From assembly GCA_035084275.1 (NCBI GenBank), contig CM068742.1, positions 154,132,001 through 154,196,000 on the forward strand: a stretch of DNA of 64,000 bases, in the 5' to 3' direction. Source of the stretch: Hydrolagus colliei. Its lineage: Eukaryota. The notes below the pieces were generated by a model, which was given only the letters and a program-made list of their open reading frames with translations, did not search any database and was not told the origin of the DNA. Position numbers and translations under genes: made by a program. Shown in pieces: positions 18,787 to 64,000 of the stretch. Positions within the stretch are counted from its first letter, which is position 1; the number at the start of each line of letters is the position of its first letter.

Positions 18787-18823
<37 letters not shown>

Positions 18824-23984: not shown

Positions 23985-25690
23985 GTGCAAGAGGGAACTG
24001 AAAAGGGAAATTAGAGGGGCAAAAACATTGTATGCAAAATGATTATCAGGTAACACTAAAGGGATCCCTAAGGTATTTTATAAGCATATCAAGAATATAA
24101 GGTTAGTTAAAGGTAGGGTGGGGCCAATTAGGGATCAAGGAAGAAATCTTATTGTGGAGGCAGAGGGCATGGCAGATATACTATATGAGTATTTTGTTGA
24201 TGTAGTTTACATTGACTTTCAAAAGGCATTTGACAAAATGCCACTTGAAAGGCTTATAAAGAAAATTGTGGACCACGGCGTAAAAGGGACAGTGGCAGCA
24301 TGGATCCAGAACTGGCTGCGAGACAGAAAGCAGAGAGTTATGGTGAACGGCTGCTTTTCTGACTGGAGGGAAGTGTAATGTGGCGTCCCCCGGGGATCGG
24401 TATTGGAACCACTGCTCTTTTTAATTTATATTAATGATCTGGACTTGGCGATAGGGAGTACCGTTTCGAAATTTGCAGATGACACAAAGTTAGGAAAAAT
24501 AATAAACCGTGAGGAGGATAGTAGCCATCTGCAAGACGATATAGACCGAATGGTAAAATGGGCAGATACATGGCGGCTGAAGTCTAATGTAGAGAAATGC
24601 TCGACTACGGCAACTCCCTCCTTGTCGGCCTCCCCAACTCTTCCCTCCACAGGCTACAGATAATCCCAAACTTTGCAGCTCGTGTCCTCTCCCACACCAG
24701 GCTCTGTCACCCCATCAACCCCACCCTCGGCCGGCTCCACTGGCTCCCCGTCCCTCAGAGAATCAAATTAAAGATTCGTATTCACCTTCAAGACCTTCCA
24801 CCCTCCTGCCTCTCTGACCTGCTGATCCCATATCAACCAATCTGTTCCCTCCGTTCAGCAGCCACCAGCCTTCTCCAAGTCTCCTGCCCCTCTCACCCTT
24901 CCATCTTTGGCAGGCTTTCAGGCTCTCTGCTACCACGCTTTGGAACTCTATCACACAATCCCTTTGCATCGCTTCCTCCCTTGCCTCTTCAACACCATCC
25001 TTTTTGAGTGTCCCTTTAGTCGCCTTCCTACCTCTCTGCCCGCCCTCATCCCAACCCTGGCCGCCCACCCCATCTCCCCCATGCTTGGGTCCTGACCCTG
25101 ACTGTTCTCTTTATCCATAAGAAATTTGTCAATCTCACTTTTGAATATATTCAAGGATTGAGCATCTACAGCCTTTTGGGGTAGCAAATTCCATAAATTC
25201 ACTACCCTCTGAGTGAAGAAGTTTTGCCTCAACTCAGTTTGAAGAAGTGTTTCCTTTATTCTGTTTAAAAAAAGGCTGACCTTTTCAATCTTAAAACTAT
25301 GACCCCCTAGTTATAGTTTCTCCAACCAAGGAAAACAGTCTCCCTCTGTCTACTCTATCATGCCCCTTAATAATCTGATAGATTTCTATATGATCACCTC
25401 TAATTCTTCTATATTCTAGAGAATACAGTCCTAGATTACTCAACCTATCCTCAAAGCTCAAATCCCTTTTCCCAGGAACCATCCTAGTGAATCTACACGG
25501 CAACCACTCTGAGGTGAGTATTACCTTTCTTAAATGAGAACAAAACTGCTCATTATATTCTATTTGCCATCTCACTAAGGCCCTACACAGTTTCAGCAAG
25601 TCTTATATCGCTACTCTTATATTCTAACCCTTGGTAATAAATGCCAACATACCGTTAGCCTTCCAAGTTGCTACGTTCTCCTGATGTGAA
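23985..25690. mobile_element. Mosaic of CR1 (+, 23985-24597), L2 (+, 24597-25095) and CR1 (-, 25095-25670) fragments
   Basis: DFQKAFDK/FADDTK fragments, DYGNSLLVGLP...LHWLP fragment, reverse LYSLEYRRIRGD fragment. Confidence 0.85.
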
Positions 25691-27054
25691 AGGCGCTATA
25701 CAAATGTAATTTTGTTGTTGTTGTTGCATGTTGTACCTGCAAACTAACTTTTTGTGACTGGTGTACAAAGACACCCAAGTCCCTCTGTTCAGTGCCTTGG
25801 GACGTCCACCCGACATGAAAGGCGCTCTACACATATAGTTGTTGTTGTTTATCTTTTAGAGGCATGATTACAGAGTCGGGTGACATTTGGAAATAAGATT
25901 CTTGTCTTTGGTTTAGCCATGGCATTTGATTTCCCCAACCTCTCTGTCTTGTCTGTGCTGCTTTTCGCTCCTCACTGGAATTCTTTACTCTAATCTGATA
26001 CCCAAGGGTTAGTAGTAGTTAAACTGTGTCAGTTACCCCCAACCACATTCTGGGGTCCTCAATACTTTTGTTTCTTCTTCCATCAGACACTTGGGTGACA
26101 ACAAATGATGGTATTTTTATAATACACACAAGAGCGTTTTTCTTTCCACAAGCCACCCATTCTAGCCCCTCTTTCCCATCACTCCCCTTCCCCACACCCA
26201 TAATATTCCTCCTCTTCAAACATCTATCCAATTCTCTTTGATAGACTTGACGTACGATGCCTTGAATCCAGTTTGTGGCAGATAATTCCACAATTCCACC
26301 CATTCTGTGTAAAGACAGGAAAACCAAAGTGTTTGCTTGTTAACTCTCTGCCTCTACTTTATATATTTCAAGCTCTTCATAGTTCCATTTTTGTGATGGT
26401 ATTAGATGTGTTCCTCTTGTGACTGTCTGGCTGGTCTATTGTCAGATCAGCTAAAATGTATTGCTTTTTCCCCTGTTGTGACTCGTTGTGACATCTATCT
26501 GGTCGCCCCAAGCCTTCTTGGTTTTTGAGGCACCAATCTCCCAGAAATCTCTTCGGATCTCAAACTTCTCATCTTTGGGGTTTGCCAATAATCTGGGATA
26601 ACAACAACAACCTGGATCTCTATAGCCTCGCTCAGAGCGCTTCCCAATAATGATTCCTGGGCCAGACTCCTCATCTCTGGGGACTTGCCAATGCACTAGA
26701 GTCATAGAATCTTACGGCATAAAAGGAGGGCATTAAGCCCATCGAGTCTGTGCCGGCTCTTTAAAAAGAGCAATTGAATCCCACTCCCCAGCTCTCTCCC
26801 CATAACCTCGCAAACCCGTCCTCCCCAAATAAATGTCTACCTCTCTTTTAAAATTTGCTATGGAATCGGCCTCACCACCATTCAGGCACTAGGATGCACT
26901 TTGTCATTGTATTTGTAATGTTCTTGCAGGGGATCCCCAAACTGTCCACATTACTCCCAGCTGTGACCTCACCAAACTCTTGTCCTAGCTCAGTGTTGCC
27001 TGTTTGCTTTTATATTGTGTTCTGGTTCACATTACACCATGTGTGACCTCACAG

Positions 27055-27444
27055 GGCTCAGTGAGAATGGCTGGACAATGGAGACCCTGATACAGTGACC
27101 GGCAGGTTAGGGTCACCAGTCATCATGTACTGCAAGTTCACTCACCCTCACCCCAGATACACAGGCAACATCACCATCATGTGGAAGGGAGGCTGGGCTG
27201 GTCCTGTGTATTTTAAATATACAAACTATAGGCCGGATTCACAGGGAAAGTATCAAAATATCATTGATGTAAACGAGGGAGATCGACACCGAGTGATTGG
27301 GAAACTGAGGAGGAACGACGCTACAATACAGATAAACCAGCTGAGGGGAGAGGACAATGATAAGCTGTTCTCCTGTCGTGTGGAGCTCCAGGGTGAGGGC
27401 AGACAGTTTGAAACTGGCCCCAGATACATGTCTGTATGTTACAG
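27055..27444 (+). pseudogene. SIGLEC15: SIGLEC15-like copy 1, V-set exon 1 (frameshifted)
   Basis: cacag|...cag|gtgagg boundaries, 390 bp. YCKFTHPHPRYTGNITIMWKGGWAGPVYF...RNDATIQINQL...FSCRVE resembles the recalled Siglec-15 V-set (CTFTHPHRHYDGPLTAIW, GNPRRND, YFCRVE). A 1-bp loss at 27085-27087 gives TGA at 27096 in the phase-1 frame. The leader exon is absent upstream. Confidence 0.85.
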
Positions 27445-27736: not shown

Positions 27737-28120
27737 GTCATGAAGAGAAGCTCCCATCAGTGACTGGTACCAAGGGAGGTGATGCCACACTGCCCTGCTC
27801 CTTCACCAGGCCCAACACACACCAGAATTGTGCCACAGTCACAGTGATTTGGAGGAGAGGGAGGCCACAAGGGCAGGTGGTTTCTAATGACTCTCTTGAC
27901 CTCACCGCCCGCAGCAAACCCGGTGAATCAGAGATAGTGAATGAAGGAAATCGCTATAACCTGGTCGGGAATGTGAGGGATGGAGACGCTTCCCTGAGGA
28001 TCAGGGACCTGGAGTTAAACAACACCAACCAGTATTTCTGTCACGTACACGTCATGTTTACCAATGGTGGACAACAACAGGGACAGGTGACGCAGGACAT
28101 GTCATGGCTGTGGGTTGTTG
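27737..28120 (+). CDS. SIGLEC15: SIGLEC15-like copy 1, V-set exon 2 (open, phase 1-1); no downstream C2/TM exon in this copy
   Basis: tctcag|gt cat...gtt g|gtaaga, 384 bp; GGDATLPCSF...VIWRRG...DASLRIRDL...QYFCHV. Homology to the copy-2 intron breaks off at ~29465, before the C2 exon. Confidence 0.8.
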
Positions 28121-28859
28121 GTAAGAAATCTCTTGTCTCTGTGGGACATGGAAAGGGATAAATAATCAGGTTAATCTTCACTGGAGCATCATTACAGATA
28201 CGGTTTGTCTCATTCCTTACCCTGTGCCTCAACAACAACAACAAAATTACACTTGAATATCGCCTCTCAAGTCAGGAGGACGTCCCAAGGCTCTGGACAG
28301 CCACTGTGTCAAACCTGAGCTCGGGTCGGCATGGGGAGGGAAGGAGGGAATTAGGAGTGGTCAATGGGACCATCGAAGAGGAGAGTCTTGAGTAGAGGAT
28401 CTGGGGAGGGGAAAAGGTGGAGAGGCTACAGGATGGATTTTCCAGAGGTTGGGGACAGAGTGGCCAAAGGCCTCGCTTCACATGGTAATTATCTCAACAA
28501 ACATGATGTGAAACAGCAGAGCCTGTTACTGGGGGCAGGGATTCTTCTCACTTGCCTCCAGTTAACGCTGCAGCCAAAGTTAGGGTGATCCTAGCTGGAC
28601 AAGCAGCCGGTATCTTGCCAATGACATGTGACGTAGTTGTCACAAAATCACAGGATTGATCTGAATGAAGAAACCACATCTAATCTTATCCTTACTGAAT
28701 GCCCCAATCACCCCCTAATCCCTACCAACCCCTCGCCCCCCAAAACATTGGTATCAAGCGGAGTCTAACAGTCTGTAATTGCTCTGTCTGAAGGGAAATT
28801 GGATAGATATGTAAAAAGGAAACATTTTCAGGGCTCTGGGGTAAGAGCGAGACAGTGGG

Positions 28860-29240
28860 ACTAGTTCGTAGCTCAGTACATCCTGTAGCTTGGGGCACTT
28901 GCCTTGCAAGCCAGAGGACCTGGGTTTGATTTTTGGGCAGGAAAAACATTGGGCAAACTTCCTTACACCACACGCCTCTGTTTACCCAGCAATGGGTACA
29001 AACCCATTTGTTAGTCGATTGTCAGATAATTTTCTGGGGGCAATAAACCCTATTTTTTAAAAAACTTATTCTTAAAATTTTGGTCAATCACTATTTATGG
29101 GACACTGCTGAGCACGATTAGCTGCTTGTTTGTGCCCGCAAAAATATCAAGTCAATTCACTTCACAGTATATTCTGTGAAACGCTTTTACACATCTAGAA
29201 TATGTGAAAAGCACTATATTAAATGAACTTATTAGTAGTA
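28860..29240 (+). mobile_element. tRNA-derived SINE with L2-type tail
   Basis: Head gtagctcag...ttgcaagccagaggacctgggtttgat and tail gtgaaaagcactatattaaatg; paralogous copies at ~43310-43590 and ~63090-63365 (-). Confidence 0.65.
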
Positions 29241-29516
29241 AATACAAGGATATTTAGGTATTATAGCTGTTTCAAAGAGCCAGTGCAGAGACAATGTGTG
29301 GAATGGCCTTCTTCCTGCTATAGGATTCTGTGATATTAAAATGGAATTATTAAGTATTTGAAGAGGAACATTATAAACAAAATGAAAATGAACAAGAAAA
29401 AGCAGAGATCAGAGTAGAAAACAACAACAACAAAATTACGTTTGTATCGTGCCTTTCATGTTGGTGCCTTTCATCAATGGTGCTGTTCTCTGAAGATCCA
29501 GATAAAACATATTGAT

Positions 29517-29762: not shown

Positions 29763-31554
29763 TAGGTTGGGTGAAATTAGTTGGATAAGATGTGAGATTT
29801 TAGACAGTGTTGCTTCAGTTACAGAAGATACATGGGCCCCAATGGTCTAATGTGGAGGGTTGAAGCCCCACAGTAGGCCATAGAGCCATATAATCTATAA
29901 TGACATTCCAGTGCAGTGCTGGTGTGGGTCCAAGTCTTGTTGGCTTTTGCCAATGTCCCATCTGCCTGCCCAGATTAAGTTCCCATCATTTTAGGAAACA
30001 GTGGCAAATTTCTGCATCTATGTCCAAGCCAACAATCCCCCAAATCAAATTGGTCACTCACGCATGACTGTGCAAATCCATGACTGTCTAGCACCTTGGA
30101 ATGTCCTTCTGATGTGAAAGGCATTTTACAAATATAATTTGGTATTGTGTTGTTCAATTGACTAGTGCGTTTGCTGACAAATTGCATTTTAAAATGTTAG
30201 ATGAAATTAAATTCATAATTTAATAATAAATAATTATTTCTATGAAAGTTATATAACAAGTTAACAATTTTCTCTTTTACCCAAACAGACAAAGTGAAGA
30301 TTGTCCAACTCTGGTCTCCTGCTCCATTCTTGTGGCTCAGCGACTGTTCACTGAATTCACTGTGATCTTGTTCTCCACTTCAGTACAGACAGTTTCTTCT
30401 TCAAGCTGCTGGATAGAGGTGTCACTGCTATTATCAGAGTAGAGAGAATCTGATCTCCGATATCAGGCTATATAGAGGTGTCACTGCTTATTACAGGCCA
30501 TATAATCATAATAATTCTTGCATTTGATAACGCACTTTTCATGTCTTCTCGACCTCATTTCACAGAACAATCTCTAAAGTGAATTGAATGTATATTTGTG
30601 GGCGAAATGTGGCAGCCAATTGTGTTCAGCCGTCGCCAATTGAGTGACCAAGTATTGTTATTCTCCTGAGGGATTATTATCAGGCCTGTGGAGTATGGAA
30701 ACATGCCCAAGACTGACAGGAATCAAACCCAGTTCTCTCGCGTGAGGTGTGAATGCTCTAACCACTGAGCTACAGAACTTCACCATGTAGAGGTGTCATT
30801 GCTAATAACAGACTATATTAGAGGTGTTAGTATTGAGGCCATATATACGTCACTGATAATATCAGGCTATTTTCAATGTGTTTACTGCTAATATCAACTT
30901 TGAGCTGTCACGTAAATATCAGACTCGAGATGATCCAATGTCTCAAGGTGATTTGGGGGCTTTTGAAGCTGATGTTTTGATCTGATGGTTAAGCTTTACT
31001 CTGTATATTTTTTTACAATGAAGCTTATTTGCCTCAATAAACTGTGTCTGTGATTCCAAGTGAACCTCTCGAGGGGAGGAGTGACCGAGGTTAATAACAA
31101 GCCTTGAGTTAATCCAGCGTTAGTAACTCCACTTACAAACTTGCTTTACAGACAGTGTGGGAGACGGTTGGGAGATTGGGGCATGATTGAGGAGGCACAG
31201 TTAAAGACAACAATCAATTCAAATCTACATTTATACAGCATCTTTCACGTCGAGAGGACATAGATGTGGTTTGGTGGGGGATGTGGGTGGGGGGGGGAGG
31301 GGGGATGGAATGGGGTGATGAGATGAAAACTATCTTACATTTATACAGTGCCCTTCACATACGATTCTGTCTCTGAGCGCCACACAGTGGTGGAGTTGGA
31401 CACTGAGCTGGGAGCAGATGGATGAGGAGTGGATGGTGCTGTCTGCACTTGCAGTTGAACAGTTGGGAATTTACAATAAATAATAATAATCCTGGTGTTT
31501 AATACAGGCAGCACTTGTCAAGTTGTCAACGCTGGTGATCACCGTAAAGGGCAG

Positions 31555-32065
31555 TGACTGGAATGGACTGGAACAGGATGCAATGTGACAGCCAGTTTGC
31601 AGGCCAGAGCCCACTGAACGGAGGGGACGGGGGAGGCTGATAAAAAGACAGTGGGTCAGAGAGATAGGCGGGGGCAAGGCTGTGAATGGCCTTGAAAGTG
31701 AGGACGAGGATCTTGAATCCAATCCTCTGGGGGACGGGGAGTCAGTGGAGACGGGCGAGGGGGGGAGTGATATGGTCGTGGAGCCAAGTGTGGGAGAGGA
31801 CATGAGCTGCTGAATTCCGAATAATCTGTGGCTTGTGAAGGGAGGAGCTGGGAAGGCCGACGAGGAGAGAATTCCCGTAGTCGAGCCCAGATGTAATGAA
31901 CGCATGGATGAGTGTTTCGGCAGCTTGGGGGGGGGGGGGGGGGGGGGGGGGGGAGGTAGTGGTAGAATCTGGCAATCTTGCGGAGGTGGTGGAAGCCTGT
32001 ATTGATCTTGGTGTGGATTTGGGGTCGAACAAGATGCCCACATTCCTGACTGCCTTAGAGAGAAA
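31555..32065 (-). mobile_element. L2 3' ORF fragment containing a ~27-nt G run
   Basis: LDYGNSLLVGLPSSSLH...LARLH; poly-G at ~31927-31953. Confidence 0.85.
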
Positions 32066-32658
32066 TAATCATATGTACAGGGCACTGTATAAATATAAAG
32101 ATAGTTTTCATCTCATCATCCAATTCCCCTCCCTCCCCCCACTCACCAAACCACATCTGCTTTTGCGGTTTGCATTTCCGTGGTAAATAAATCTAAGAAA
32201 GGACATACTCGCCTTAAAGGGGACGCAGTGTATATTCAATAGGGTGGTTTCTGGGATGAGAGGGTTGAGCTATGGATAGGTTTAGTAACCTAGGCCTATG
32301 TGCTTGAGAATATAGAAGAATTAGAGGTGATCGTATAGAAACCTATAAGATTATTAAGGGGCATGACAGAGAAGACATTGGGAGACTATTTCCCCTGGTT
32401 GGAGAAACTATAACTAAGGGTCACAGTCTTAAGATTAAGGGGTCAGCTTTTTCACACTAAGTTGAAGAAATGCTTCTTCAGTCATGAATTTGTGTAATTT
32501 TCTTCCCCAAAAGACTGTAGATGCTCAGTCCTTGAAGATATTCAAGACCGAAATTGATAGATTTCTTATGGATAAAGGGATTAAGGGATATGAATATAAG
32601 TGCGTGTCAGTGCGAGGCAGGCGTGCGAGGGGAAGGAGTGTGTCCTGAGTGAGGGAAG

Positions 32659-32710
32659 ATGATGCTGTGCGCTGTGCTCTGTGCCCTAGTCCTGTCAGCC
32701 TCTGCCTTAC
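32659..32710 (+). CDS. SIGLEC15: Signal-peptide (leader) exon, extra copy
   Basis: MMLCAVLCALVLSASAL + c|gtaagt consensus phase-1 donor. Confidence 0.7.
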
Positions 32711-33974
32711 GTAAGTACTTTCCAATCAGTAACTATCCCTTCTGGAATTCCATCCCACAATCCCCTCCCTGACCTCCTTCAAGTCTCACCTCAAGACTCT
32801 CCTCTTCGATGGTCCCATTGGCAACTCCCTGTCCTCAGCTCGGGTCTGATACAGTGACTGTCCAGTGCCTTGGGATGACCTCCTGATGTAAAGTCACTGC
32901 AGAAGTGTAATTCCGTGGTTGTTGTTGTTCATGTCACAAGAGAGAGACCTGGGTTCAATTCCCAGCAGGGCAAAATGTTGGCCAAGTTTCCTTACTCCAC
33001 AAGCCAATGATTACCTGGCAGTAAGTAGGAACCCAGTTGTTAGTCGATTGGAGAATCACTTTTCATAATTAGTTATAAAAATTATAATTAATTGATCAAA
33101 TCGATCCATGGCTGTTTGTAGGACACGGCTGTGTTGAATTCTCTGCTGTGATTCACTCACAAAATATAATCAAGTCACTTTACAGATTATTCCGTGAAGA
33201 TCTTTGAGACGACAAATGCAACGATTGTTAGTGATGACCTGGAGTTGCAGACCCAGTGTAAAATAGTTAAGAGAATGGGACGGTGGAAGGATTAGTGTTG
33301 GGAAGAACAGTACAGAGGCTCAGAACAAAGCAGACGTGGGGGGTGGAACTCAGACAGTGACCACAGAACGAGGGGAGGATGGAAATAGAAGGGTGAACAG
33401 TTGTGTCAGTGTGAAGCAGGCATGTGAGGGGAAGTGGTGAAGAGATGATGCTGGGAGCTGTGCTCTGTCCCTGGTCCCGGAATTTAGTGTTGACCTAATA
33501 GAGGATGAATAGGGGAACTAGGAATAGATTATTTCTGCTGATCAGCCAGATAGTTTCAACAGGGACTTATCTGAAACCACAACAAAAATAGCAACCAAGG
33601 GGAGGGCGTGGAAACTCTGTCCTTACACAGCAGGGTTGCAGTTGTGGAACCAACTACAATCACGGCAAAATCCATCAAGTCTATAAAGGGATTTGAATAG
33701 ATGTTCCAGAGGATGTACATTAAAAGGTGTGGGGGGTGGGGGAGTGACCCAACTCCCACATCGGGTCCAAATCCCTAATTGTCCAGGGCCTTGGGACATC
33801 CTCCCAACATGAAAGTGCTGTAGAATGTCATGTATTTGGGATATAAAGCTGTGGGCAATGTAAACGAGTATTAAACTTCACCCAGTGAGTGTAACATGGG
33901 GCGGGGGCAGAGTTAGTGTTAAAACATTGCAGAGGATCAGACAAGGGTGATGTGGGGGATGGAGCTCTGGTGGT

Positions 33975-34074: not shown

Positions 34075-34126
34075 ATGATGCTGGGAGCTGTGCTCTGCGC
34101 CCTGGTCCTGTCAGCCTCTGCCTTAC
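34075..34126 (+). CDS. SIGLEC15: SIGLEC15-like copy 2, leader exon
   Basis: MMLGAVLCALVLSASAL + c|gtacgt phase-1 donor; hydrophobic signal peptide. Confidence 0.8.
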
Positions 34127-36158: not shown

Positions 36159-36548
36159 GGATCAGTGTGAATGGCTGGACAATGGAGACCCTGATACAGT
36201 GACCGGCAGGTTAGGGTCACCAGTCATCATGTATTGCAAGTTCACTCACCCTCACCCCAGATACACAGGCAACATCACCATCAGGTGGAAGGGAGGCTGG
36301 GCTGGTCCTGTGTATTTTAAATATACAAACTATAGGCCAGATTCACAGGGAAAGTATCAAAATGTCATTGATGTAAACGAGGGAGATGGACACTGAGTGA
36401 TTGGGAACCCGAGGAGGAACGACGCTACAATACAGATAAACCAGCTGAGGGGAGAGGACAATAATAAGAAGTTCAACTGTCGTGTGGAGCTCCAGGGTGA
36501 GGGCAGACAGTTTGAAACTGGCCCCAGATACATGTCTGTATGTTACAG
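36159..36548 (+). pseudogene. SIGLEC15: SIGLEC15-like copy 2, V-set exon 1 (frameshifted, extra stop)
   Basis: 390 bp; same -1 (36189-36191) and +1 C-run changes; TGA at 36394; GNPRRND and CRVE (Arg 36481-36483) retained. Confidence 0.85.
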
Positions 36549-37395
36549 GTGAGGAACGATGGGAAGTGGGAATGAGACGTGATGATCCTCACTGGTGCCG
36601 GAGTCAGTGGGAAGTATCTCGCCCAGGACGGGCAATAGGGAGCGAGTGTTCCCAGTGAAGGAAGGTGTGGAACAGGGGCTGGCAGGGACAGTGAGTGAGC
36701 GGCTGATGGGAGGGAGGGCTGTGCTGTAGACTGTAAGGTTTTCGCACCTTGGAAGGGGGATAAATTGAAGCGTTTGTCAGAAACCTCACCAAATATATAT
36801 TGTTAAGAGTTTGGTTGTTAATTGCATAAAAACATTTGTAAGGCTTGTATACCATCATTGGTGCGTTATATATCACAGTTACCCATTGCATCATCAATAC
36901 TCGTCGTATTTAAATGACAACTAAGGCATTATATTAACAAGATTCACTCAAAAATCCTAATTCAAAACAACTAGAATACAGTACTATCTTAACAAGATTA
37001 ATTCAAAATCATAATTCTAAACATAAAAGAAACCTTATGTAGTATAAGAGATATGCCTCAGCAAGTCTGACTGCCCTTGCATGTTGGGAGCATGTTTTAG
37101 TAAGTAGGAACGATACTACCGAGTATTCAAGAGGTTGCCCAAAGGACTTGTAGATGTCGTTCTGTGGCAGGCCGAAGTAAACACAGTCTCTGGCTTGCTT
37201 CTGGCTGCAAACATCTTCGGCTTCTTTCTCTCTGCTGCAGTGTTCTTTGCCGTCCTAGAACTACACCTGCTCCCTTCTGTGGTCTTCTCTGGCGAGAGCT
37301 AGACTAGGATCTCTACCTCCCTTCAGAGGTCTGTTCGTTCATGACTTCTAAAGTTTTGCTACCAAGTGTTATACCTCTAGACGAATCAACGCGCT

Positions 37396-39620: not shown

Positions 39621-40028
39621 AGTTTCCCCACTACTGATGTTAGATGTTAGATATTTGCTAACCTTTTCTTGGCATTCTTCCCTACCTTCGCTTGAGTCAC
39701 TTTTGTATTGCTTAGAGGTTACAGTACTCTCGCCTTTTTTTTTTACACACAAGATTTGCTCCTTTTCATCTTATCTAACCCGACCAGACCTCCTGACTTA
39801 CTTGTCCTTGATGGTCTGAACATTTTCAATAATTCATTGTCCTGTCTTTGGATCTCTCTATGTGACTTACTCATCTGAAGCTTTCGCAGCCCTTTCAGTG
39901 CTCATTTTTGGGATAATACAGTAACTGCTACTTCAATGGACTGTCATCCATTCTCCTGATTCTTATCTAGTCACATTCCAGTGCAAGCCCATCTCAATGT
40001 TTCTATCTTGAACTGAATGTGTGTGTGT

Positions 40029-48581: not shown

Positions 48582-48850
48582 TGGAGAAAGGGAGAGTAGT
48601 GTGGACAGGGAGAGTAATGGGGACAGGGAGAGCAGTGGGGATAGAGAGAGTAGTGGGGACAGGGAGAGTGATGGCGACAGGGAGCGTGATGAGAAAAAGG
48701 AGAGAAGTGGAGACAGGGAGAGTGATGGAGAAAGGGAGAGTAGTGGGAACAGGGAGAGTAGTGGGGACAGGGAGAGTAGTGTGGACAGGGAGAGTAATGT
48801 GGAAAGGGAGAGTGATGAGGCAAGAGAGAATAGTGGAGACTGGGAGAGTA

Positions 48851-52425: not shown

Positions 52426-52506
52426 AAAAGCGCCTTGGGACGTCCTCTCGACATGAAAGGCGCTATATAAATGTAAGTTTTGTTTCTTTGTTTGTATGTT
52501 TGTTTG
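52426..52506 (+). mobile_element. ~80-bp L2/SINE 3' tail inserted in the minisatellite
   Basis: agcgccttgggacgtcctctcgacatgaaaggcgctatataaatgtaag + T-rich tail. Confidence 0.8.
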
Positions 52507-52914
52507 AGTAGTGGGGACAGGGAGAGTAGTGGGGACAGGGAGAGTAGTGGGGACAGGGAGAGTAGTGGGGACATGGAGAGTAGTGGGGACAGGGAGAGTA
52601 GTGGGGTCAGAGAGAGTAGTGGGGACAGGGAGAGTAGTGGGGACAGGGAGAGTTGTGGGGACATGGAGAGTTATGAAGAAACAGAGAGTAGTGGTGACTG
52701 GGAGAATAGTGGGGACAGAGTGAGTGATGGGGACAGGGAGAGTGATGGGGACAGAGAGAGTGATGGGGACAGGGAGAGTGATGGCAGTTTCATTATCACG
52801 ATGCTGTGTCTGATGCCCGCAGCTAAATGTCTCTTTCTGCTGGTGATGGGGATCATTCTCATGAGGAAACAAAAGGTTTGCTCATTACCAGAAACGAGCC
52901 CAGAGCTGGGATAG
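52507..52914 (+). pseudogene. SIGLEC15: SIGLEC15-like copy 2, end of stalk + TM (Lys) + short tail, disconnected from C2
   Basis: ...ESDGSFIITMLCLMPAAKCLFLLVMGIILMRKQKVCSLPETSPELG*; Lys codon 52825-52827. Confidence 0.8.
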
Positions 52915-53148
52915 GTTCAGGCTGAGGTGATACATTCTGTTACAGTAGAGCGGGGGTTACGTAAAATCACTTTGGGTAAGCTTAATAAGTAATGGGCAAA
53001 AGGGGGTTTAGGGGAATCCAGCCACAGACTATCCAACCTCAAGCCTCCACACCCGACCAATGCAAGGTACGTACTGAGGCAGGCTACAGCCGGCTGGCCC
53101 GCTCTCCCCGCTCTTCACTCTCATCGCTCTCACTGACTCACTAGAGAC

Positions 53149-53154
53149 AATAAA
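53149..53154 (+). terminator. Candidate polyadenylation signal AATAAA
   Basis: ~235 bp after the TM-exon stop; conserved in the inverted copy at 60830-60835. Confidence 0.35.
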
Positions 53155-53399
53155 ACAGCACCTTACACTACCATAGCTCGGCTCAATCATTTTACCTTTG
53201 GACCTGGAAGGGTTAGGTTTTATGGATACATTAAATATGAATGAAACAACCTGGATTGTACGTTATCAATGAATGATAATGATGAGGATGGTCAACTCGG
53301 AGAGGGGTTGACAATCCGAGGCCGAGAAAACATCGGACTGAGGCGGGAGCTGGCGGCGTCCTCCCAAGTGAGCATGTGGGAGCTCCTGTGGCTCTTGGA

Positions 53400-53850
53400 G
53401 CTCCTGTGGCTCAATGGTGATGGCACGTGTCTTGCAAGCTGGGGAGACCAAGCTGGGGAGACCTGTGTTCGAATCCAGGCAGCTCAGGGTGAAACCTCCA
53501 AAAAAAACCCACAATACTAAAATTGGTCATTTCAATCTACGTCAGTGTGTGGGACACTGCTGTGCGCAATTGGCTGCCGCAATTCGCCGACAAATATATA
53601 CTTATCAACGTCCCAAAGCGCTTCACAGGATATACTGTAAAGTGAATTGACTGTATATTTGTGGGCGAATCGCGGCAGCCAATTGCGCTCAGCAGTGTCC
53701 CACACACAGTCGAGGATTGAAATGACCAATTTTATTATTGTGTTTTTTTGGAGGGATTATTATTAGGCGTGTGGAGTAAGGAAACTTGCCCAAGGTTTCG
53801 CCCTGATCTGCCTGGATTCGAACAAAGGTCTCCCCAGCTTGGTACTACAT
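53400..53850. mobile_element. Tail-to-tail fused pair of tRNA-SINEs forming a long inverted repeat
   Basis: Arm 53448-53600 is the reverse complement of most of 53650-53842; mirrored at ~60135-60590. Confidence 0.8.
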
Positions 53851-54025
53851 GTATTATACCAGGTTCATTGTGAAGCTTGCAATGTTGGTTCACAGTTACT
53901 CTTAACTGTGATACTATTTAATGAGTACAAAATTGTAAATCCTTGAAGTATTTCCCAGCAATGTCTCAGGATGGTTAACAGAAGCCAGTTCCCCTGGTTC
54001 AGTTGGTAACACTAGGACTAGTTGT

Positions 54026-54330
54026 GGAGTCCTGTAGCTCAGTGGTCAGAGCTATTGCCTTACCAGAGAGAGGCCTGGGTTCAATTCCCTGCAGGGAGAA
54101 ACCTTGTACAGGTCTCCATTCGCCACAGGCCTGATAGCAATCCCTCACAAATCAGTAAAGAATTGGTCATTTCAATCCATGACTGTTTGTGGGACACTGC
54201 TGTACGCAATTCGCTGCCTTGTTTTGTTCACAAATATAGTCTTTACAGTATATTCTGTGAAGCGCTTTGAGACAGTCTACAAGACATGAAATGCGCTATA
54301 TTAAATGCTGGGATTATTATTATTATTATT
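54026..54330 (+). mobile_element. Full-length tRNA-derived SINE with L2-type tail
   Basis: A box gtagctcagtgg, B box gggttcaattcc, L2-type tail, (tat)n; near-identical copy at 59654-59958 (-). Confidence 0.8.
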
Positions 54331-54874
54331 GAAGCACACTCAACTCTGGGCCAGAAACAACAACAACAACTTTGATTTATATAACGCCCTCCACGCCGGA
54401 CGGCGTCTCAGCTCTCAGAGGTTTACAACAGCGGATCCCGGGACAGAGCCAGGGGGAGGGGCAGAAAGCACGGAGACCAAAAGCAAGGTCACCTTTCAGT
54501 TGTGACCTGAAACTGGGAAGAGAGGGGGCGATGCAAAGCGAGTGAGGAAGGGAGTTCCAGAGTCTCGGGGAGTAGTGGCTGAAGGCCTGGCCGCCGAGGG
54601 TGGAGAGGAGGATGGAGCGGAGTAAGCTCTTGGTACCTGCTAATCCTATATTACCCTGCCCTTGCTACATCCATTGCCTACTTCAAGTCACGTCTACTCA
54701 TTGATCACACCTTCGATCACCCCCCGAACCCTCCCTGATCTGAACCCTCTACAGCTTGGGAGGAAATCCATGACTGTCTAGTGTCTTGGGATGTCCTTCT
54801 GATGTGAAAGGCATTTTACAAATATAATTTGGTATTGTGTTGTTCAATTGACTACTGCGTTTGCTGACAAATTG

Positions 54875-55690
54875 AAGTTTAATACAGAGAAGTGTGAGGT
54901 GATGCATTTTGGGAGAAGAAATGAAGGGAGGCAATATAGGCTAGATAGTACAATTTTAAATGGTGTGAAGGAACAGAGAGACCTGGGGATTTGTGTTAGT
55001 GACTCGTTGAAGTGGCAGGACAGGTAGACAAGGCTGTTAAGAAGGCATATGGGATACTAGGCTTTATAAATAGGGGTATAGAGTACAAACGTCAGGAAGT
55101 GCTGACTAACCTCTATAAGAGTTTGGTGAGGCCTCAGCTGGAATACTGTGTTCAATTCTGGTCACCACACTACAGAAAGGATGTGAAGACATTGGAAAGG
55201 GTACACGGAAGATTTACTAGGATGGTGCCAGGATTGAGGGCCTTCAGCTATGAGGAGAGGCTAGATAGGCTAGGGTTATTCTCTCTGGAGCAGAGAAGAT
55301 TGAGGGGAGACCTCATAGAGGTTTATAAGATCATGAGGGGTTTCGACAGGGCAAATAAAGAAAAACTATTTCCACTCGTGGGCGAATCTGTGAATCGTGG
55401 TCACAGATTTAAAATAGATTCAAGGCGAAGTAGAGGGGAGCTGAGGAGAATTTTTTTCACTCAGCGAGTTGTTCGAATCTGGAATGCATTGCCTGAAAAG
55501 GTGGTGGAGGCTGATTCGATAACAACTTTTAAAAGGGAATTAGATCTTTATTTATGGAGAACAGGTCTATTAGGCTATGGGGAGCGGGCAGGGCAGTGGG
55601 ATTGAATCGCTCTTTTCAAAGAGCCGGCACAGACTAGATGGGCCGAATGGCCTCCTTTTGTGCCGTAAAATTCTATGAATCTATGAATCT
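54875..55690 (+). mobile_element. Young CR1 3' fragment with 6-bp TSD
   Basis: TSD aaattg at 54869-54874 and 55691-55696; empty site at ~30178. Confidence 0.95.
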
Positions 55691-56846
55691 AAATTGCATT
55701 TTAAAATGTTAGATGAAATTCAATTCATAATTTAATAATAAATAATGATTTCTATGAAAGTTATGTAACAAGTTAACAATTTTCTCTTTTACCCAAACAG
55801 ACAAAGTGAAGATTGTCCAACTCTGGTCTCCTGCTCCATTCTTGTGGCTGAGCGACTGTTCACTGAATTCACTGTGATCTTGTTCTCCACTTCAGTACAG
55901 ACAGTTTCTTCTTCAAGCTGCTGGATAGAGGTGTCACTGCTATTATCAGAGTACAGAGAATCTGATCTCCGATATCAGGCTATATAGAGGTGTCACTGCT
56001 TATTACAGGCCATATAATCATAATAATTCTTGCATTTGGTAATGCACTTTTCATGTCTTCTAGACCTCTCAAAGCATTTCACAGAACAATCTCTAAAGTG
56101 AATTGAATGTATATTTGTGGGCGAAATGTGGCAGCCAATTGGGCTCAGCCATTGTGGATTCAGTGACCAAATATTGTTTGTCTCTTGAGGGATTATCATC
56201 AGGCCTGTGGAGTATGGAAACATGCCCAAGGCTTCACCCTGCTGGGAATCTTGTTTGAGGGGTGAGTGCTCTAACCACTGAACTACAGAACTTCACCATA
56301 TAGAGGTGTCATTGCTAATAACCATTGCTAATAGCTGATGGTTAAGCTTTGCTCTGTATATTTTTTACTGATCCACAATAAAGGTTATTTGCCTGAATAA
56401 AATGTGTCTGTGATTCCAAGTGAACCTCACGAGGGGAAGAGTGGCCGAGGTTAATAACAAGCCTTGAGTTAATCCAGGGCTACTAACTCCACTTACAACT
56501 TGCTTTACAGACAGAGTGGGAGTCATTTGGGAGATTGGGGTGCGATTGAGGAGGCACAGTTAATTAAATAGATGTGGTTTGGAGGGCATGGGGGGTTGGG
56601 GAATGGGGAGGGGATGGAATGGGGTGATGAGATGAAAACTATCTTGCATTTATACAGTGCCCTACACATATAATTACGTCTCTGAGCGCCACACAGTGGT
56701 GGAGGTGGACACTGAGCTGGGAGTAGATGGATGAGGAGTGGATGTTGCTGGCTGTATTTGTGGTGGAACGGTTGGGATTTATAATAAATAATAAGTGAAC
56801 AGTTGTGTCAGTGTGAAGCAGGCACATGAGGGGAAGGGGTGCAGAG

Positions 56847-56903
56847 ATGATGCTGGGAGGTGTGGTCTGTACCCTGGTCCCATCAGCCTCTGCCATGGTT
56901 TAG
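56847..56903 (+). pseudogene. SIGLEC15: Degenerate leader exon of the next tandem copy
   Basis: MMLGGVVCTLVPSASAMV*; phase-1 donor lost; followed by the inversion junction at ~57.1 kb. Confidence 0.6.
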
Positions 56904-58014
56904 CAGTGACCTAATAGAGGATAAGAATAGGGGACATAGCAATAGATTCTTTCTGCTGATCAGCCAGTTAGTTACAAGAGGAACATATCTAAACCTATGA
57001 CAAAAAAAGGAACTAAGGGGAGAGGTTGTAACCCTGTCTTTACACAGAAGGGCTGCATTTATGGAATTTTCTTAATAGGGATGACTAACCGCAGAAAATG
57101 GTACCAAACAATCGACTAACAACTGGGTTCGTACCCATTGCTGGGTAAACAGAGGCGTGTGGAGTAAGGTAGTTTGCCCAATGTTTTTCCTGCCCAAATA
57201 TCAAACCCAGGTCCTCTGGAATGCAAGGCAAGTTCCCCAAGCTACAGGATGTACTAAGCTACCAACTAGTCCCACTGTCTCGCTCTTACCCCAGAGCCCT
57301 GAAAATGTTTCCTTTTTACGTATCTATTCAATTTCCCTTCAGGCAGAGCAATTACAGACTTTTAGACTCCGCTTGATACCAATGTATTGGGGGGCGAGGG
57401 GTTGGTAGGGATTAGGGGGTGATTGGGGGGTTCAGTAAGGATAAGATTAGATGGGAATTCTTCATTCAGACCAATCCTGTGATTTTGTGAAAACCACATT
57501 ACATGTCAATGGCAAGATACCGGCTGCTTGTCCAGCTAGGATCACCCTAACTTTGGCTGAAGCTTTAACGGGAGGCAAGTGAGAAGAATCCGTGGCCCCA
57601 GTAACAGCTTCCACTGTTTCATATCAAGTTTCTTGTGCTAATTATCACGTGAGGCGAAGCTTTAGCAACTCTGCCCCCAACCTCTGGAACTCGATTCCGC
57701 AATCCCTCCGCCTGGCTCCCTCCCTGGCCTCCTTCAAGTCTTGCCTCAAGTCTCTCCTCTTCGATGGTCCCATTGACCACTCCTAATTCCTCCCGTCCCT
57801 CCCACTTGTCCCCAGCTCAGGTCTGACATACTGACTGTCCAGAGCTTTGGGATGTCTTCCTGACTTGCGAGGCACTATTCAAGTGTAATTTTGTTGTTGT
57901 TGTTGAGGCACAGGGTAAGGAATGAGACAAACCTTGTCTGTAATGAATCTCCAGTGAAGATTAACCTGATTATTTACCCCTTTCCATGTCCCACAGAGAC
58001 AAGAGATTTCTTAC

Positions 58015-58397
58015 CAACAACCAGCAGCTGTGACGTGTCCTGTGTCACCTGTTCCTGTTGTTCTCCGCCATAGATAAACATGACGTGTACGTTACAGAAA
58101 TACCGGTCGGTGTCGTTTAACTCCAGGTCCCTGATCCTCAGGGAAGCGTCTCCATCCCTCACATTCCTGACCAGGTTATAGCGATTTCCTTCATTCACTG
58201 TCTCTGAGTCCGTGGGGTTGGAGCGGGAGGTGAGGTCAACAGTGTCATTAGTAACTGGCTGCCCTTGTGCCTCCCTCTCCTCCAAATCACTGTGACTGTG
58301 GCAGGATTCTGGTGTGTGTTGGGCCTGGTGAAGGAGCAGGGCAGTGTGGCATCACCTCCCTTGGTACCAGTCACTGACGGGAGCTTCTCTTCATGAC
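58015..58397 (-). pseudogene. SIGLEC15: SIGLEC15-like copy 3, V-set exon 2 (1-bp deletion)
   Basis: 383 bp against 384; frameshift near 58269 splits ORFs 58195-58494 and 57974-58285. Confidence 0.85.
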
Positions 58398-58689: not shown

Positions 58690-59110
58690 CTGTAACATAC
58701 AGACATGTATCTGGGGTCAGTTTCAAACTGTCTGCCCTCACCCTGGAGCTCCACATGACAGTTGAACTTTTGAACAGTTGACAATTGAACAGGAGAAAGT
58801 CTTATTATTGTCCTCTCCCCTCAGCTGGTTTATCTGTATTGTAGCGTCGTTCCTCCTCGGGTTCCCAACCACTCGGTGTCGATCTCTCTCGTTTACATCA
58901 ATGACATTTTGATACTTTCCCTGTGAATCTGGCCTATAGTTTGTATATTTAAAATACACAGGACCAGCCCAGCCTCCCTTCCACATGATGGTGATGTTGC
59001 CTGTGTATCTGGAGTGAGGGTGAGTGAACTTGCAGTACATGATGACTGGTGACCCTAACCTGCCAGTCACTGTATCAGGGTCTCCATTGTCCAGCCATTC
59101 ACACTGATCC
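58690..59110 (-). pseudogene. SIGLEC15: SIGLEC15-like copy 3, V-set exon 1 (shared frameshifts, 31-bp insertion, Arg to His)
   Basis: 421 bp; GNPRRND present; tgtcatgtggag (CHVE); no leader upstream. Confidence 0.85.
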
Positions 59111-61069: not shown

Positions 61070-61650
61070 CTATCCCAGCTCTGGGCTCATTTCTGGTAAT
61101 GAGCAAACCTTTTGTTTTCTCATGAGAACGATCCCCATCACCAGCAGAAAGAGACATTTAGCTGCGGGCATCAGACACAGCATCGTGATAATGAAACTGC
61201 CATCACTCTCCCTGTCCCCATCACTCTCTCTGTCCCCACTACTCTCCCAGTCCCCACTACTCTCCCAGTCCCGACCACTCTCCCAGTCCCCACTACTCTC
61301 CCTGTCCCCATCACTCTCCCAGTCCCCACTACTCTCCAAGTTCTCATAGCTCTCCCTGACCCATTCACTCAGTGGTCCAAGCGCGAGGATGTCTTGAGTG
61401 TCACTGCCCTGTGTGTTCTCAGCTACACAGCGATATGTTCCCCTCAGCTTCAGGCCCCAGATCTCCCCCACGGTTAGATGCGTGTCTGGTATGTGTGTGA
61501 CTGTTGTGTGTTCAGTGTTGATGGGCAGCGTGTTATTCTGGGGGTCGATCCATGTGATGGTGGCTGGTGGTTCCCCCTCAGCCGTGCACACGATGCCACC
61601 TCCGGCTCCATCACCGGCCACGATGGACAGAGTCAGGATGACGGCCGGAG
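61070..61650 (-). CDS. SIGLEC15: SIGLEC15-like copy 4, intact C2 + 8-unit stalk + Lys-TM + short tail exon; upstream exons lie beyond the window
   Basis: Acceptor ttctttatacccaaag|ct; 581 bp open (2+193x3); CTAEGEPP...YRCVAEN...(ESSGDW/ESDGDR)x8...FIITMLCLMPAAKCLFLLVMGIVLMRKQK...ELG*. Confidence 0.85.
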
Positions 61651-61765
61651 CTTTGGGTATAAAGAAACACAGAGTTATTCTGATTAAATAACTTTCACCG
61701 TCATATCCGCTGGTACTCACTTACTCACTGGTGCTCCTTGGATGGCCCCCCAACATGAAAGACAC

Positions 61766-62865
61766 TAGTGTCCGGCGATATATCGATATATCGCTAAAAC
61801 CCGATATAATTTTCATATCGATACGCCAATATAGACATTTTAAATATATCGAAAAAACTATATATCTAGGTAAAAAATCGGGATGTGAGCACACTGAACT
61901 ACAAGACCCAGAATGCTCATCTCTATACACAATGCACAGACCGAGGTGCAAAGCCGCCATATTGTATTCACAGTCCTCGAATACAATATACGGGTATGCA
62001 AGGGGTGGGGGGTGAGAGAGACGGCTGGACGGGGGGGTGGGGTTAGGGGGAGCGAGACTGCTGGGGGGGGCTGAGGGGGAGAGAGACGGCTGGAGGGAGG
62101 GGGAGAGAGACGGCTGGGGGGGAGGGGGAGATAGACTGCTGGGGAGGAGAGGGGGAGAGAGACGGCTGGGGGGAGGGGGAGAGAGACGTTTGGGGGAAGG
62201 GGGAGAGAGACGGCTGGGGGGAGGGGTGAGAGACGTCTGGGGGGAGGTGGAGAGAGACATCTGTGGGAGGGGGAGAGAGACGGCTGGGGGGGGAGAGATG
62301 GCTGTGGGGAGAGAGATGGCTGGGGGGGGGAGGAGAGGGGGAGAGAGACAGCTGGGGGGAGGGGGAGAGAGACGGCTGGGGAGAGGGCGGTGAGACAGCT
62401 GGGGGGAGAAAGACGGCTGTGGGGGGGAGAGAGACGGCTGGGGGGGGAGGGAAAGAGAGACGGCGGGGGGTGGGTGGGAGAAAGAGACGGCTGGGGGGTT
62501 GGTGGGGGAGAGAAACGACGGTGGTGGGGGGTGCGAGAGAGAGACAGCAGGGTGGGGGGGGGGGGGAAGTGACGGGGTGCATGTGATAATATACAGATAG
62601 ATAGAGATGGGGGGGATGTGAGAGAGGGAGAGAGACATAGAGACACACAGACAGAAATACACAGAGATGGAGAGAGTGAGAGACACAGAGAGAGAAAGAT
62701 ATTTACATCCTGAGAAGATAGGCCCTGCACGCGCGCGCACTCCGAATGCGCATGCCGCGCGCGCCTGCGCAGTACAAAAAACCCGAAAATATCGATATTT
62801 CGGTATATCTCGATATGAGCCCATCGATACATTTAATCAGAAGATTTCCATATTGACGGACCCTA
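61766..62865. mobile_element. Non-autonomous hAT-type DNA transposon with internal G-rich minisatellite
   Basis: Imperfect 16-bp TIR TAG(G/T)GTCCG(G/T)C(G/A)ATAT; 8-bp TSD aaagacac/aaagacat; empty site at ~43815 on the other strand; ATATCGAT-rich subtermini. Confidence 0.85.
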
Positions 62866-63608
62866 AAAGACATTATACAAATGTAATTTTGTTGTTGTTT
62901 TCTGCACTAATCCCATTGCATACTTTTCTCTTGTACATTTTCGCTTTGTTTGTAATGTTCTTCTTCAAATACTTAATAATTCCATTTTAACATCACAGAA
63001 TCTTATAGCAGGAAGAAGGCCACTCTGGCCATCATCTTTGCACTGGCTTTTTCAAAGAGCTATAATACATAATCATCCCTGTATTTACTGCTACTAATAA
63101 TGATAATTGCATTTAATATAGTGCTTTTCATGTCTTCTAGATGTCTCAAAGCGTTTCACAGAATATACTGGCAAGTGAATTGATTTTATATTTTAAACCA
63201 GTAGCTAATTTCACACAGCAGTGTCCCACAAATATTGAATGACCAAATTTTAATTTTTTTAAAAAAAAAACAGTGTTTATTGCCCCCAGAAAATTACCTG
63301 ATAATCGACTAACAACTGGGTTCAAGGCAAGTGCTCCAAGCTACAGGATGTACTGAGCTACCAACTAGTCCCACTCTTACCCAAGAGCCCTGAAAATGTT
63401 TCCTTTTTACTTATCTATCCAATTTCCCTTCAGGCAGAGCAATTACAGACTTTTAGACTCCGCTTGATACCAATGTATTGGGGGGCGAGGGGTTGGTAGG
63501 GATTAGGGGGTGATTGGGGGGGTTCAGTAAGGATAAGATTAGATCGGGTTTCTTCATTCAGACCAATCCTGTGATCTTGTGAAAACCACATTACATGTCA
63601 ATGGCAAG

Positions 63609-64000
63609 TAGGGTCCGTCGATATGGAAATTTTCCAATTTAGATATGTCGACGGGCTCATATCGAGATATACCGAAATATCGATATTTTGGGGTTTTACG
63701 TACTGCGCTTGCGCGCGCGCACATTCGGGGCCTATCTCCTCAGGAGGTAAATATCTTTCCATCACTGTGTCTCTCACGTTCACTCTCTCCATCTCTGTAT
63801 CTTTCTGTCTGTGTCTCTGTGTCGCTCTCCTCTCTCACATCTCCCCCATCTCTATCTATCTGTATATTATCACATGCACCCCATCTCTCCCCCCACCCCA
63901 CCCCCCCTGCCACCGTTCCTCTCTCCCTCCACCCCCCAGCCATCTCTCTCCCCCTACCCCCCCCAGCCGTCTCTCTCCCCCTCGCCCCCCCAGCCGTCTC
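63609..64000. mobile_element. Second copy of the hAT element, opposite orientation, cut by the window end
   Basis: Begins TAGGGTCCGTCGATAT and is the reverse complement of ~62400-62865. Confidence 0.85.

Follow-up and report, generated by a model that had tools for sequence, protein, structure and literature searches.

Five units of a Siglec-15-like receptor gene on both strands

The DNA analysed here is a 64,000-nucleotide stretch of the chimaera Hydrolagus colliei (GenBank assembly GCA_035084275.1, contig CM068742.1, positions 154,132,001 to 154,196,000 of the forward strand), which we call the window and number from its first nucleotide. It holds no N, its composition looks vertebrate, and between 24.6 and 64 kb it carries repeated immunoglobulin (Ig) exons on both strands for a receptor resembling Siglec-15. 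A sequence-only reading of the same DNA had proposed at least four partial gene copies, on both strands, in a tandem birth-and-death array. The array was borne out, with an inversion in addition, and we counted five units, either copies or fragments:

Unit A, plus strand: first V exon (V1) and second V exon (V2)
Unit B, plus strand: leaders, V1, V2 and an exon for C2, stalk and transmembrane (TM) segment
Unit E, plus strand: a degenerate leader alone
Unit D, minus strand: V1 and V2
Unit C, minus strand: C2-stalk-TM exon, with its V exons past the window end

Six-frame scanning placed FTHPH at 27137 (+), 36241 (+) and 59028 (-), GNPRR/RRND at 36403 (+), 27308 (+) and 58866 (-), CRVE at 27374 (+) and 36478 (+), CTAEGEPP at 43992 (+) and 61588 (-), and the lysine-bearing TM segment (MPAAKCLF) at 52774-52875 (+) and 61190-61110 (-). 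The motifs on which the sequence-only reading had relied (FTHPH, GNPRRND, CRVE, CTAEGEPP and the TM lysine) were thus each recovered at their place. Pfam assigned V2 to V-set (6.7e-14), V1 to V-set with a weak match (0.0048) and the C2 exon to I-set/Ig_3. Exon borders were set by the guidance of Callorhinchus milii proteins together with splice sites; the leader, V1, V2 and C2 junctions are all phase 1, as had been proposed, and the TM exon ends in phase 0. The V-V-C2-stalk-TM architecture with a TM lysine also held. A separate "mini" exon did not: what had been read as one corresponds to the opening 30 nt of V1 (ISVNGWTMET), put out of frame by a 1-bp deletion that all three V1 copies share.

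Self-BLAST gave 80-97% DNA identity among blocks from 24.6 kb to the window end, which are broken up by pieces of transposons and a single, very long tandem repeat, and tblastn matched the individual exons to C. milii proteins with E values of 1e-38 to 1e-59. Taken together, these values place the similarity far above chance. The lysine form is the only TM type within the window, where no exon for an immunoreceptor tyrosine-based inhibitory motif (ITIM), for a cytoplasmic tail or for a canonical single-V Siglec-15 was found. We conclude with good confidence that the window is a piece of a holocephalan Siglec-15-family receptor cluster, whose five units arose by tandem duplication and one inversion and are mostly dead.

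A single exon for C2, stalk and transmembrane helix, and its minisatellite

Two C2-stalk-TM exons are present, and one of them has been greatly enlarged:

61109..61650, minus strand: C2-stalk-TM exon of copy C, 542 bp, intact, with a phase-1 acceptor, 8 stalk repeats, lysine TM SFIITMLCLMPAAKCLFLLVMGIVLM and donor AAG/GTTTGC
43930..52875, plus strand: C2-stalk-TM exon of copy B, swollen by the stalk minisatellite, its single reading frame lost
44218..52779, plus strand: 18-bp minisatellite of consensus GGGACAGGGAGAGTAGTG, translated SSGDRE, forming the stalk of copy B over ~8.5 kb
48855..49893, minus strand: 3' fragment of a CR1-like long interspersed nuclear element (LINE), 1039 bp, octamer tail ATTCTATG, inserted in the copy B stalk array

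Copy C has a single open reading frame (ORF) through C2, eight 18-bp units and TM. In copy B, C2 lies in frame 0 and TM in frame 1, and the ORF that starts in C2 ends at 48581, so that this copy in its present form cannot yield a membrane protein. The TM sequence MPAAKCLFLLVMG is present in both. Tandem Repeats Finder (TRF) counted 474 copies over the copy B array at 75% match, or ~418 once the CR1 insert is subtracted, and a peptide census gave SSGDRE as the commonest unit. The first 4.3 kb of the array keep the C2 frame, after which there are four frame switches. The CR1-like insert is 97.7% identical to 4855-5893, related copies of it give an RVT_1 match, and a further short transposable element (TE) fragment lies near 52411-52505. 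The 18-bp unit is free of stops in five of six frames; the 1543-codon ORF is therefore compositional and gives no evidence of selection, and we rejected the length of the giant-stalk ORF as a sign of it.

The repeat has the marks of a coding minisatellite: its unit length is divisible by 3, it lies in frame in the exon, and its copy number differs between gene copies. An array that is intronic and non-coding, separating a C2 exon from a TM exon, is an unlikely alternative. It would fit the GTGAGT found directly after the C2 domain in copy B, the compositional origin of the long ORF in a unit with five open frames, and the finding that none of the annotated proteins searched (275-875 aa) has a long SSGDRE-type stalk. 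However, copy C reads C2, eight repeats and TM in one frame with neither an acceptor nor a polypyrimidine tract before TM, and the candidate cryptic splice sites are phase-incompatible; for these reasons excision of the array between C2 and TM was rejected. Predicted C. milii proteins also pass from C2 to TM through 1-4 related units, namely one (QSDG) in P0001 and ~3-4 (SDGDGH/SDGGRH, between C2 and TM) in P0002.

As a stalk, the array resembles the variable-number tandem-repeat stalks of mucin, GPIb-alpha and PSGL-1 type, which also place an in-frame short repeat of variable copy number between ectodomain and TM. It differs from them in its acidic SSGDRE unit and in that the ~418-unit copy is out of frame and interrupted by a TE. 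This array is most likely a by-product of a pseudogene and not a working giant stalk. The repeat peptide is composed of S 26%, E 21%, D 16%, G 15% and R 15%, and 143 Ser-Gly dipeptides in 1451 stalk residues, mostly flanked by acidic residues, are like glycosaminoglycan attachment motifs. Speculatively, judging from this composition, the acidic Ser-Gly stalk might carry glycosaminoglycan or O-glycan chains. The 44218-52779 array also shows a higher-order periodicity of ~1.6-2.3 kb.

Shared frameshifts in V1 and private lesions in the copies

The leader and V exons are the following:

32659..32710, plus strand: leader exon copy 1 MMLCAVLCALVLSASAL, intact, phase-1 donor GTAAGT
33445-33468, plus strand: degenerate leader inside block X of unit B (a duplicated block, described below)
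34075..34126, plus strand: leader exon copy 2 of unit B MMLGAVLCALVLSASAL, intact, phase-1 donor GTACGT
27055..27444, plus strand: V1 pseudo-exon of copy A, 390 bp, CRVE arginine kept, body frame off both phase-1 junction frames
36159..36548, plus strand: V1 pseudo-exon of copy B, same two frameshifts as A and an in-frame stop (GH-stop-VIG)
58690..59110, minus strand: V1 pseudo-exon of copy D, 421 bp, shared frameshifts, 31-bp F-strand duplication, CRVE changed to CHVE
27737..28120, plus strand: V2 exon of copy A, 384 bp, phase 1-1, intact ORF, F-strand CHVH without arginine
41283..41666, plus strand: V2 exon of copy B, 384 bp, intact
58015..58397, minus strand: V2 pseudo-exon of copy D, 383 bp, 1-bp deletion, frame shifted after VIWRRGR

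All three V1 exons (A, B and D) share one pattern. From the phase-1 acceptor they read (R)LSENGWTMET or ISVNGWTMET, like the C. milii proteins P0001 and P0002, and then LIQ followed by a stop; copy A has LSENGWTMET, and its 3' end (...TCLYVT) is readable in the junction frame only. The V1 body (PDTVTG...CRVE...FETGP) sits in the next frame in every copy, and the final codons (TCLYVT + G) return to the first frame, where they match the TRLIVTG of P0002 and fit the phase-1 donor. Relative to the paralogs, A, B and D thus all lack 1 bp after MET and have 1 bp too many ahead of the final six codons, while they differ from each other by 4-7% elsewhere. Two frame offsets common to three diverged copies indicate that these V1 exons derive from an ancestor that was already dead.

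Further damage is private to single copies: the stop in V1 of B, the 31-bp duplication in V1 of D, the 1-bp deletion in V2 of D, the frame switches and CR1 insertion in the stalk of B, and the truncation of A and D. Introns are retained. What is still intact in the window comes to the C2-stalk-TM exon of copy C, two V2 exons and two leaders. Most of the window copies are therefore pseudogenes or fragments, and the V1 frameshifts, the truncations of A and D and the broken stalk of B speak against the living lineage-specific expansion envisaged by the sequence-only reading.

It is improbable that the window copies are instead working genes of a live lineage-specific expansion, with the V1 offsets due to assembly errors or bypassed by unusual splicing. 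The V1 body of copy A is open for ~124 codons, V2 of A and B, the two leaders and the C exon are intact with canonical splice sites, and dN/dS (the ratio of nonsynonymous to synonymous substitution rates) between copies is at or above 1, as in diversifying receptors. Against this stand the two independent offsets common to three copies, the private lesions listed above, and the lack of C2 and TM in A and D. The body frame of V1 moreover ends at a phase-2 donor, which is incompatible with the phase-1 V2 acceptor, and the junction AG+GTCATGA gives a stop. As for dN/dS, the values between window copies (0.9-1.9 for V1 and 1.2-5.9 for V2, from small counts) fit relaxed constraint or earlier diversifying selection alike, and neutral decay explains values near 1 equally well.

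Several points nevertheless weigh against a cluster of mostly dead genes with the family function that we propose below. The frameshifts were called against paralog protein sequences and not against aligned paralog genes. The 5' V1 frameshift falls in a short C run (ACCC[C]T), where an assembly error is formally possible, though it would have to recur in three copies that are 4-7% diverged. The Ig exons are all of phase 1, and a leader spliced straight to V2 and onward to C2-stalk-TM keeps the frame. By skipping V1, a gene in which this exon is dead could thus, on the evidence of its reading frames, still make a V2-C2 receptor (leader-V2-C2-stalk-TM). Gene C, whose V exons lie past the window end, and perhaps others could still be expressed. 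Lastly, sialic-acid binding, adaptor pairing and expression are argued by analogy with Siglec-15 and with paired receptors.

Three leader copies lie in tandem upstream of copy B (32659, 33445 and 34075) at a spacing of ~0.6-0.8 kb; the two intact ones are 95% identical over 133 bp and the third is decayed. They could be alternative first exons or remnants of further collapsed units.

Tandem duplication, inversion and retrotransposon insertion

Outside the exons, self-comparison defined these blocks:

28333..29464, plus strand: V2-C2 intron remnant of copy A, with a self-BLAST match to B 42780-43830 and C 63608-62866
30074..33649, plus strand: upstream block X of unit B, split by TE pieces, ~88-94% identity to 54764-57066
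36734..41169: 4.4-kb nested retrotransposon fragments in the V1-V2 intron of copy B, missing in copy A
52622..54673, plus strand: terminal part of the B exon, comprising the final stalk repeats and the TM, with its 3' flank, an inverted duplicate of 61362-59311, 96.8% identical
54764..57066, plus strand: unit E, block X', with a CR1 insert at 54873-55691 and a degenerate leader at 56847-56894 without a donor
57074..57803, minus strand: V2-C2 intron remnant of copy D, found by self-BLAST, where the copy is truncated
62864..63608, minus strand: V2-C2 intron of copy C, whose V exons lie past the window end
62073-62498: G-rich 24-bp minisatellite GAGGGGGAGAGAGACGGCTGGGGG, ~18 copies, within an extra intron segment (61765-62864) of copy C, between the intron block and the C2 exon

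A tblastn search within the window found no C2, TM or tail exon downstream of A and D; since no C2-stalk-TM follows the intron remnant of A, we regard copy A as truncated. Block X (30074-31486 and 33393-33649) recurs downstream of B as X' (54764-57066), which carries its own decayed leader, so that A, B and E stand in tandem on the plus strand. The inverted part starts at ~57074 and runs to the window end. Its breakpoint lies between 56894 and 57074, and the end of the C exon with its 3' flank (61362-59311) adjoins D directly. Self-comparison joined A 27629/27624 to B 36733/41170, which marks the retrotransposon block, and ORFs at 38585-38926 and 40124-40435 within this block gave RVT_1 matches.

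The duplicated 3' flank contains tRNA-Gly(ACC)-like sequences at 54028-54099 (+) and 59885-59956 (-), which score ~31-32 bits, barely over the Rfam tRNA threshold, and are probably the heads of a tRNA-derived short interspersed nuclear element (SINE). A SINE-related element (peptide DTAVRNWLP...KYTVNSLYSI) is scattered in the window and was also drawn into the N-terminus of the Ensembl model for C. milii Siglec-15 (P0050). Beside the 24-bp minisatellite, an 80% inverted repeat (62457-62865 / 64000-63609) reaches the window end.

Assignment to the Siglec-15 family

Searches of the PDB with phmmer put human Siglec-15 (7ZOZ) first for both V domains, at 1.8e-12 for V1 (next CD33, 2.4e-4) and at 6.6e-11 for V2 (next TIM-1, 1e-5). 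The V1 sequences FSCRVE and FNCRVE of copies A and B align to human YFCRVE, with the arginine directly after the F-strand cysteine (human C142-R143). R143 is essential to Siglec-15, where it pairs with the carboxylate of sialic acid in a salt bridge (PMC10264397, PMC7226832). V2 has CHVH or CHIH at this place, so that the arginine is found in V1 alone. The Siglec-15-like character claimed by the sequence-only reading was upheld by these matches and by the position of V1 on the Siglec-15 side of the V-domain tree.

The nearest proteins in the protein collection are seven C. milii paralogs (E 1e-85 to 1e-175, 47-72% identity). P0001 (LOC103174418) reads leader-V1-V2-C2, short stalk, TM with lysine and short tail; in P0002 (LOC103188801) almost the same ectodomain is followed by an uncharged TM and by a tail that carries VIYSEV and VIYAVV; P0003 (XP_007907096) is named Siglec-15 isoform X1 by NCBI. 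The window copies share with P0001, P0002 and P0003 the exon plan, the domain order, similar introns, the TM sequence MPAAKCLFLLV and 72-82% identity per Ig domain. None is identical to them, and they differ in their disabling lesions and in stalks of 8 and ~418 units against 1-4. In the Ensembl-type models P0014 and P0015, intron read-through matches the window introns almost residue for residue. An AlphaFold2 model of P0001 (mean predicted local distance difference test, pLDDT, 89) shows three Ig domains and a TM helix; a whole-chain Foldseek search of it against the PDB returned only generic multi-Ig proteins (titin, IgLON, NCAM, MAG), which confirms the three Ig domains and does not inform on the family.

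Likeness to bony-vertebrate Siglec-15 (SIGLEC15/CD33L3) extends to the B-F disulfide and the arginine after the F-strand cysteine in V1, the G-strand aromatic-Glu pair, GW(S/T)M, C2 and the lysine TM helix. The match in C2 and the lysine TM covers lungfish, coelacanth, bird and mammalian Siglec-15. The lysine of Siglec-15 is used for pairing with DAP12/DAP10 (PMC10264397, PMC7226832). The differences are an arginine-less V2 between V1 and C2, which makes the ectodomain V1-V2-C2 and not V-C2, multiple copies with ITIM partners, a hexapeptide-repeat stalk, and C2, stalk and TM in one exon. The second V disulfide of the human protein (C95-C104, C'-C'' loop) is also absent, there being no cysteine in the window V1 segment FKYTNYRPDSQGKYQN. 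It is missing as well in the canonical C. milii Siglec-15 (P0050) and present in lungfish, and is thus not universal in the Siglec-15 family.

That the genes belong to another V-set family (CD300, TREM, PILR, TIM or pIgR-like) and resemble Siglec-15 only superficially is highly improbable: TIM, PILR and VSIG4 are among the weaker PDB matches of V2, a frog pIgR-like protein joins near the V2 clade on a long branch, C95-C104 is missing and the whole-chain fold search is generic, but Siglec-15 leads the PDB matches by ~5 (V2) to 8 (V1) orders of magnitude and has THPH...GNPRRND...YFCRVE, the C-R pair and GW(S/T)M in common with these genes, C2 and the lysine TM match it from lungfish to mammals, many members bear its name at NCBI, and the genes probably lie on the same chromosome as the canonical SIGLEC15 in five species.

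Age of the two-V plan in cartilaginous fishes

Relatives were gathered by an exhaustive HMMER search with P0001 and then by name look-ups. V1-V2-C2 proteins are predicted in Heptranchias (P0012, with an ITIM-rich tail), in Mobula (P0013, with a lysine TM, and P0008) and in Amblyraja (P0009, P0011), and a V1-V2 protein in Narcine (P0021); models from Rhincodon, Scyliorhinus and Rhinoraja are partial, mostly V2-C2. A separate single-V "canonical" Siglec-15 is found in C. milii (P0050/P0166), Carcharodon, Amblyraja and Mobula. Maximum-likelihood analysis of 95 V domains, with support given as ultrafast bootstrap (UFBoot)/Shimodaira-Hasegawa-like approximate likelihood ratio test (SH-aLRT), recovered these clades:

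Two-V proteins of chondrichthyans, V1: 98/95
Two-V proteins of chondrichthyans, V2: 93/92
Canonical Siglec-15 of chondrichthyans, V domain: 99/98
Siglec-15 of bony vertebrates, V domain: 97/90

The main split (95/86) puts V1 on the Siglec-15 side, as proposed from the motifs, with the exact sister group of V1 weakly resolved. The V2 clade is chondrichthyan apart from the one long-branched frog pIgR-like protein. Because the V1 and V2 clades each hold chimaera and elasmobranch sequences, the V duplication is older than the holocephalan-elasmobranch split. The presence of V1-V2-C2 proteins in sharks and rays, with separate V1 and V2 clades, leaves the proposal of a lineage-specific duplicated V exon unsupported. 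Two-V Siglec-15-like proteins also occur in lungfish, gar and axolotl. Their V domains fall inside the bony-vertebrate clade, where each groups either with the other V of its own protein or with the corresponding V of a related one; these duplications are thus distinct from the one behind chondrichthyan V1 and V2. The C2 tree unites every chondrichthyan C2 domain, whether from a V-C2 or a V-V-C2 protein, in one group (80/91). For V2 and C2 the window copies make up a sub-branch of their own, the third within the C. milii clade, and for V1 they stand beside the annotated C. milii sequences.

Models P0008, P0009 and P0011 (Mobula and Amblyraja) read V-V-C-V-V-C, V-V-V-V-C or V-V-C-V, and look like read-through of adjacent tandem genes (two in P0008) or extra V2 duplications; such models indicate that rays and skates, too, have tandem arrays of two-V genes. 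Records from five species place the two-V genes and the canonical one on contigs of identical size, which points to a common chromosome.

The window copies are new and largely dead, and intact two-V relatives are already in public annotations of sharks, rays and chimaeras. The sequence-only reading had asked whether V-V-C2 is an already described state in chondrichthyans. In public annotation it is; in the searchable literature on Siglec-15 in cartilaginous fish or Callorhinchus, we found no paper describing a two-V Siglec-15-like family. Chondrichthyans lie outside the scope of the paper on teleost Siglecs (PMC7226832). The chondrichthyan paired family therefore seems to be undescribed in the searchable literature.

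Paired forms and a proposed model of the family

Members with a lysine TM (P0001, P0003, P0013, P0017) carry the lysine at the same position as bony-vertebrate Siglec-15, and ITIM forms are represented by P0002, P0016 and P0012. The lysine form P0001 and the ITIM form P0002 are 83% identical, and the lysine and ITIM members P0001, P0189 and P0016 are recorded on contigs of the same size, 139.2 Mb. The paralogs thus show what is seen in a paired-receptor cluster: near ectodomains, a charged TM with short tail or an uncharged TM with ITIM, and location in one cluster. The single-V genes annotated as Siglec-15 (P0050, P0022, P0030, P0032) have an uncharged TM, and the Carcharodon one an ITIM-like LDYSEV. 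Among these chondrichthyan sequences the lysine TM occurs in two-V members, whereas the "canonical" V-C2 gene lacks it, and the annotated orthology to tetrapod/mammalian SIGLEC15 may be mis-assigned.

The CD33-related Siglec, KIR/LILR, PILR and CD300 clusters of mammals are similar in their tandem and inverted duplicates, many pseudogenes, charged-TM and ITIM forms with near-identical ectodomains, and V-domain dN/dS of at least 1. They differ in that the founder here is Siglec-15 and not CD33, the host is a cartilaginous fish and the plan is V-V-C2.

The family plan comprises a leader exon, V1 with a putative sialic-acid-binding arginine, an old divergent V2 with histidine there, and one exon for C2, an acidic Ser/Gly hexapeptide stalk and the TM helix. 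In the model that we propose, intact members would bind sialylated ligands through V1. Lysine-TM, short-tail forms would signal through a DAP12-type adaptor and ITIM forms with uncharged TM would recruit phosphatases, the two kinds acting as paired activating/inhibitory sialoglycan sensors on leukocytes. The cluster would turn over by birth and death. In the window, A and D are truncated in the V2-C2 intron, E is reduced to a decayed leader, and B is broken by retrotransposons and the runaway stalk minisatellite (~8.5 kb). The visible part of C alone could still be part of a working gene, of the activating type. More tentatively, all cartilaginous fishes may possess an undescribed paired family derived from Siglec-15 (V1 with arginine, arginine-less V2, C2, and lysine-TM or ITIM forms) on the SIGLEC15 chromosome, evolving by birth and death like mammalian CD33-related Siglecs, with a coding-minisatellite stalk of 1 to hundreds of units, and calling for a revision of orthology.

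In bone disease and in cancer, Siglec-15 serves as a drug target. From fish to man it has been regarded as conserved, single-copy and activating (PMC7226832). In cartilaginous fishes, its lineage appears multigene, two-V, and both activating and inhibitory, which would parallel the mammalian CD33-related expansion independently and raises the issue of which chondrichthyan gene is the true SIGLEC15 ortholog. The window adds little on function, because most of its copies are dead; it documents how such a cluster changes, by duplication in tandem and in inverted orientation, by the invasion of LINEs, by descent from a common pseudogene and by the runaway growth of a coding repeat.

Flank of the cluster

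The first 24.5 kb of the window contain no genes, a flanking marker included, but only LINE reverse-transcriptase fragments, which take up most of this part, and GA-rich simple repeats. The fragments (1-24500) are of CR1/L2 type, and several are 95-98% identical to each other, which indicates recent activity. GA/CT-rich simple repeats lie at 845-4000, 6139-6311 and 17935-19233. The same region also shows segmental duplication, 247-2397 matching 17338-19554, and 6165-9344 matching 19392-22573 at 94.6%.

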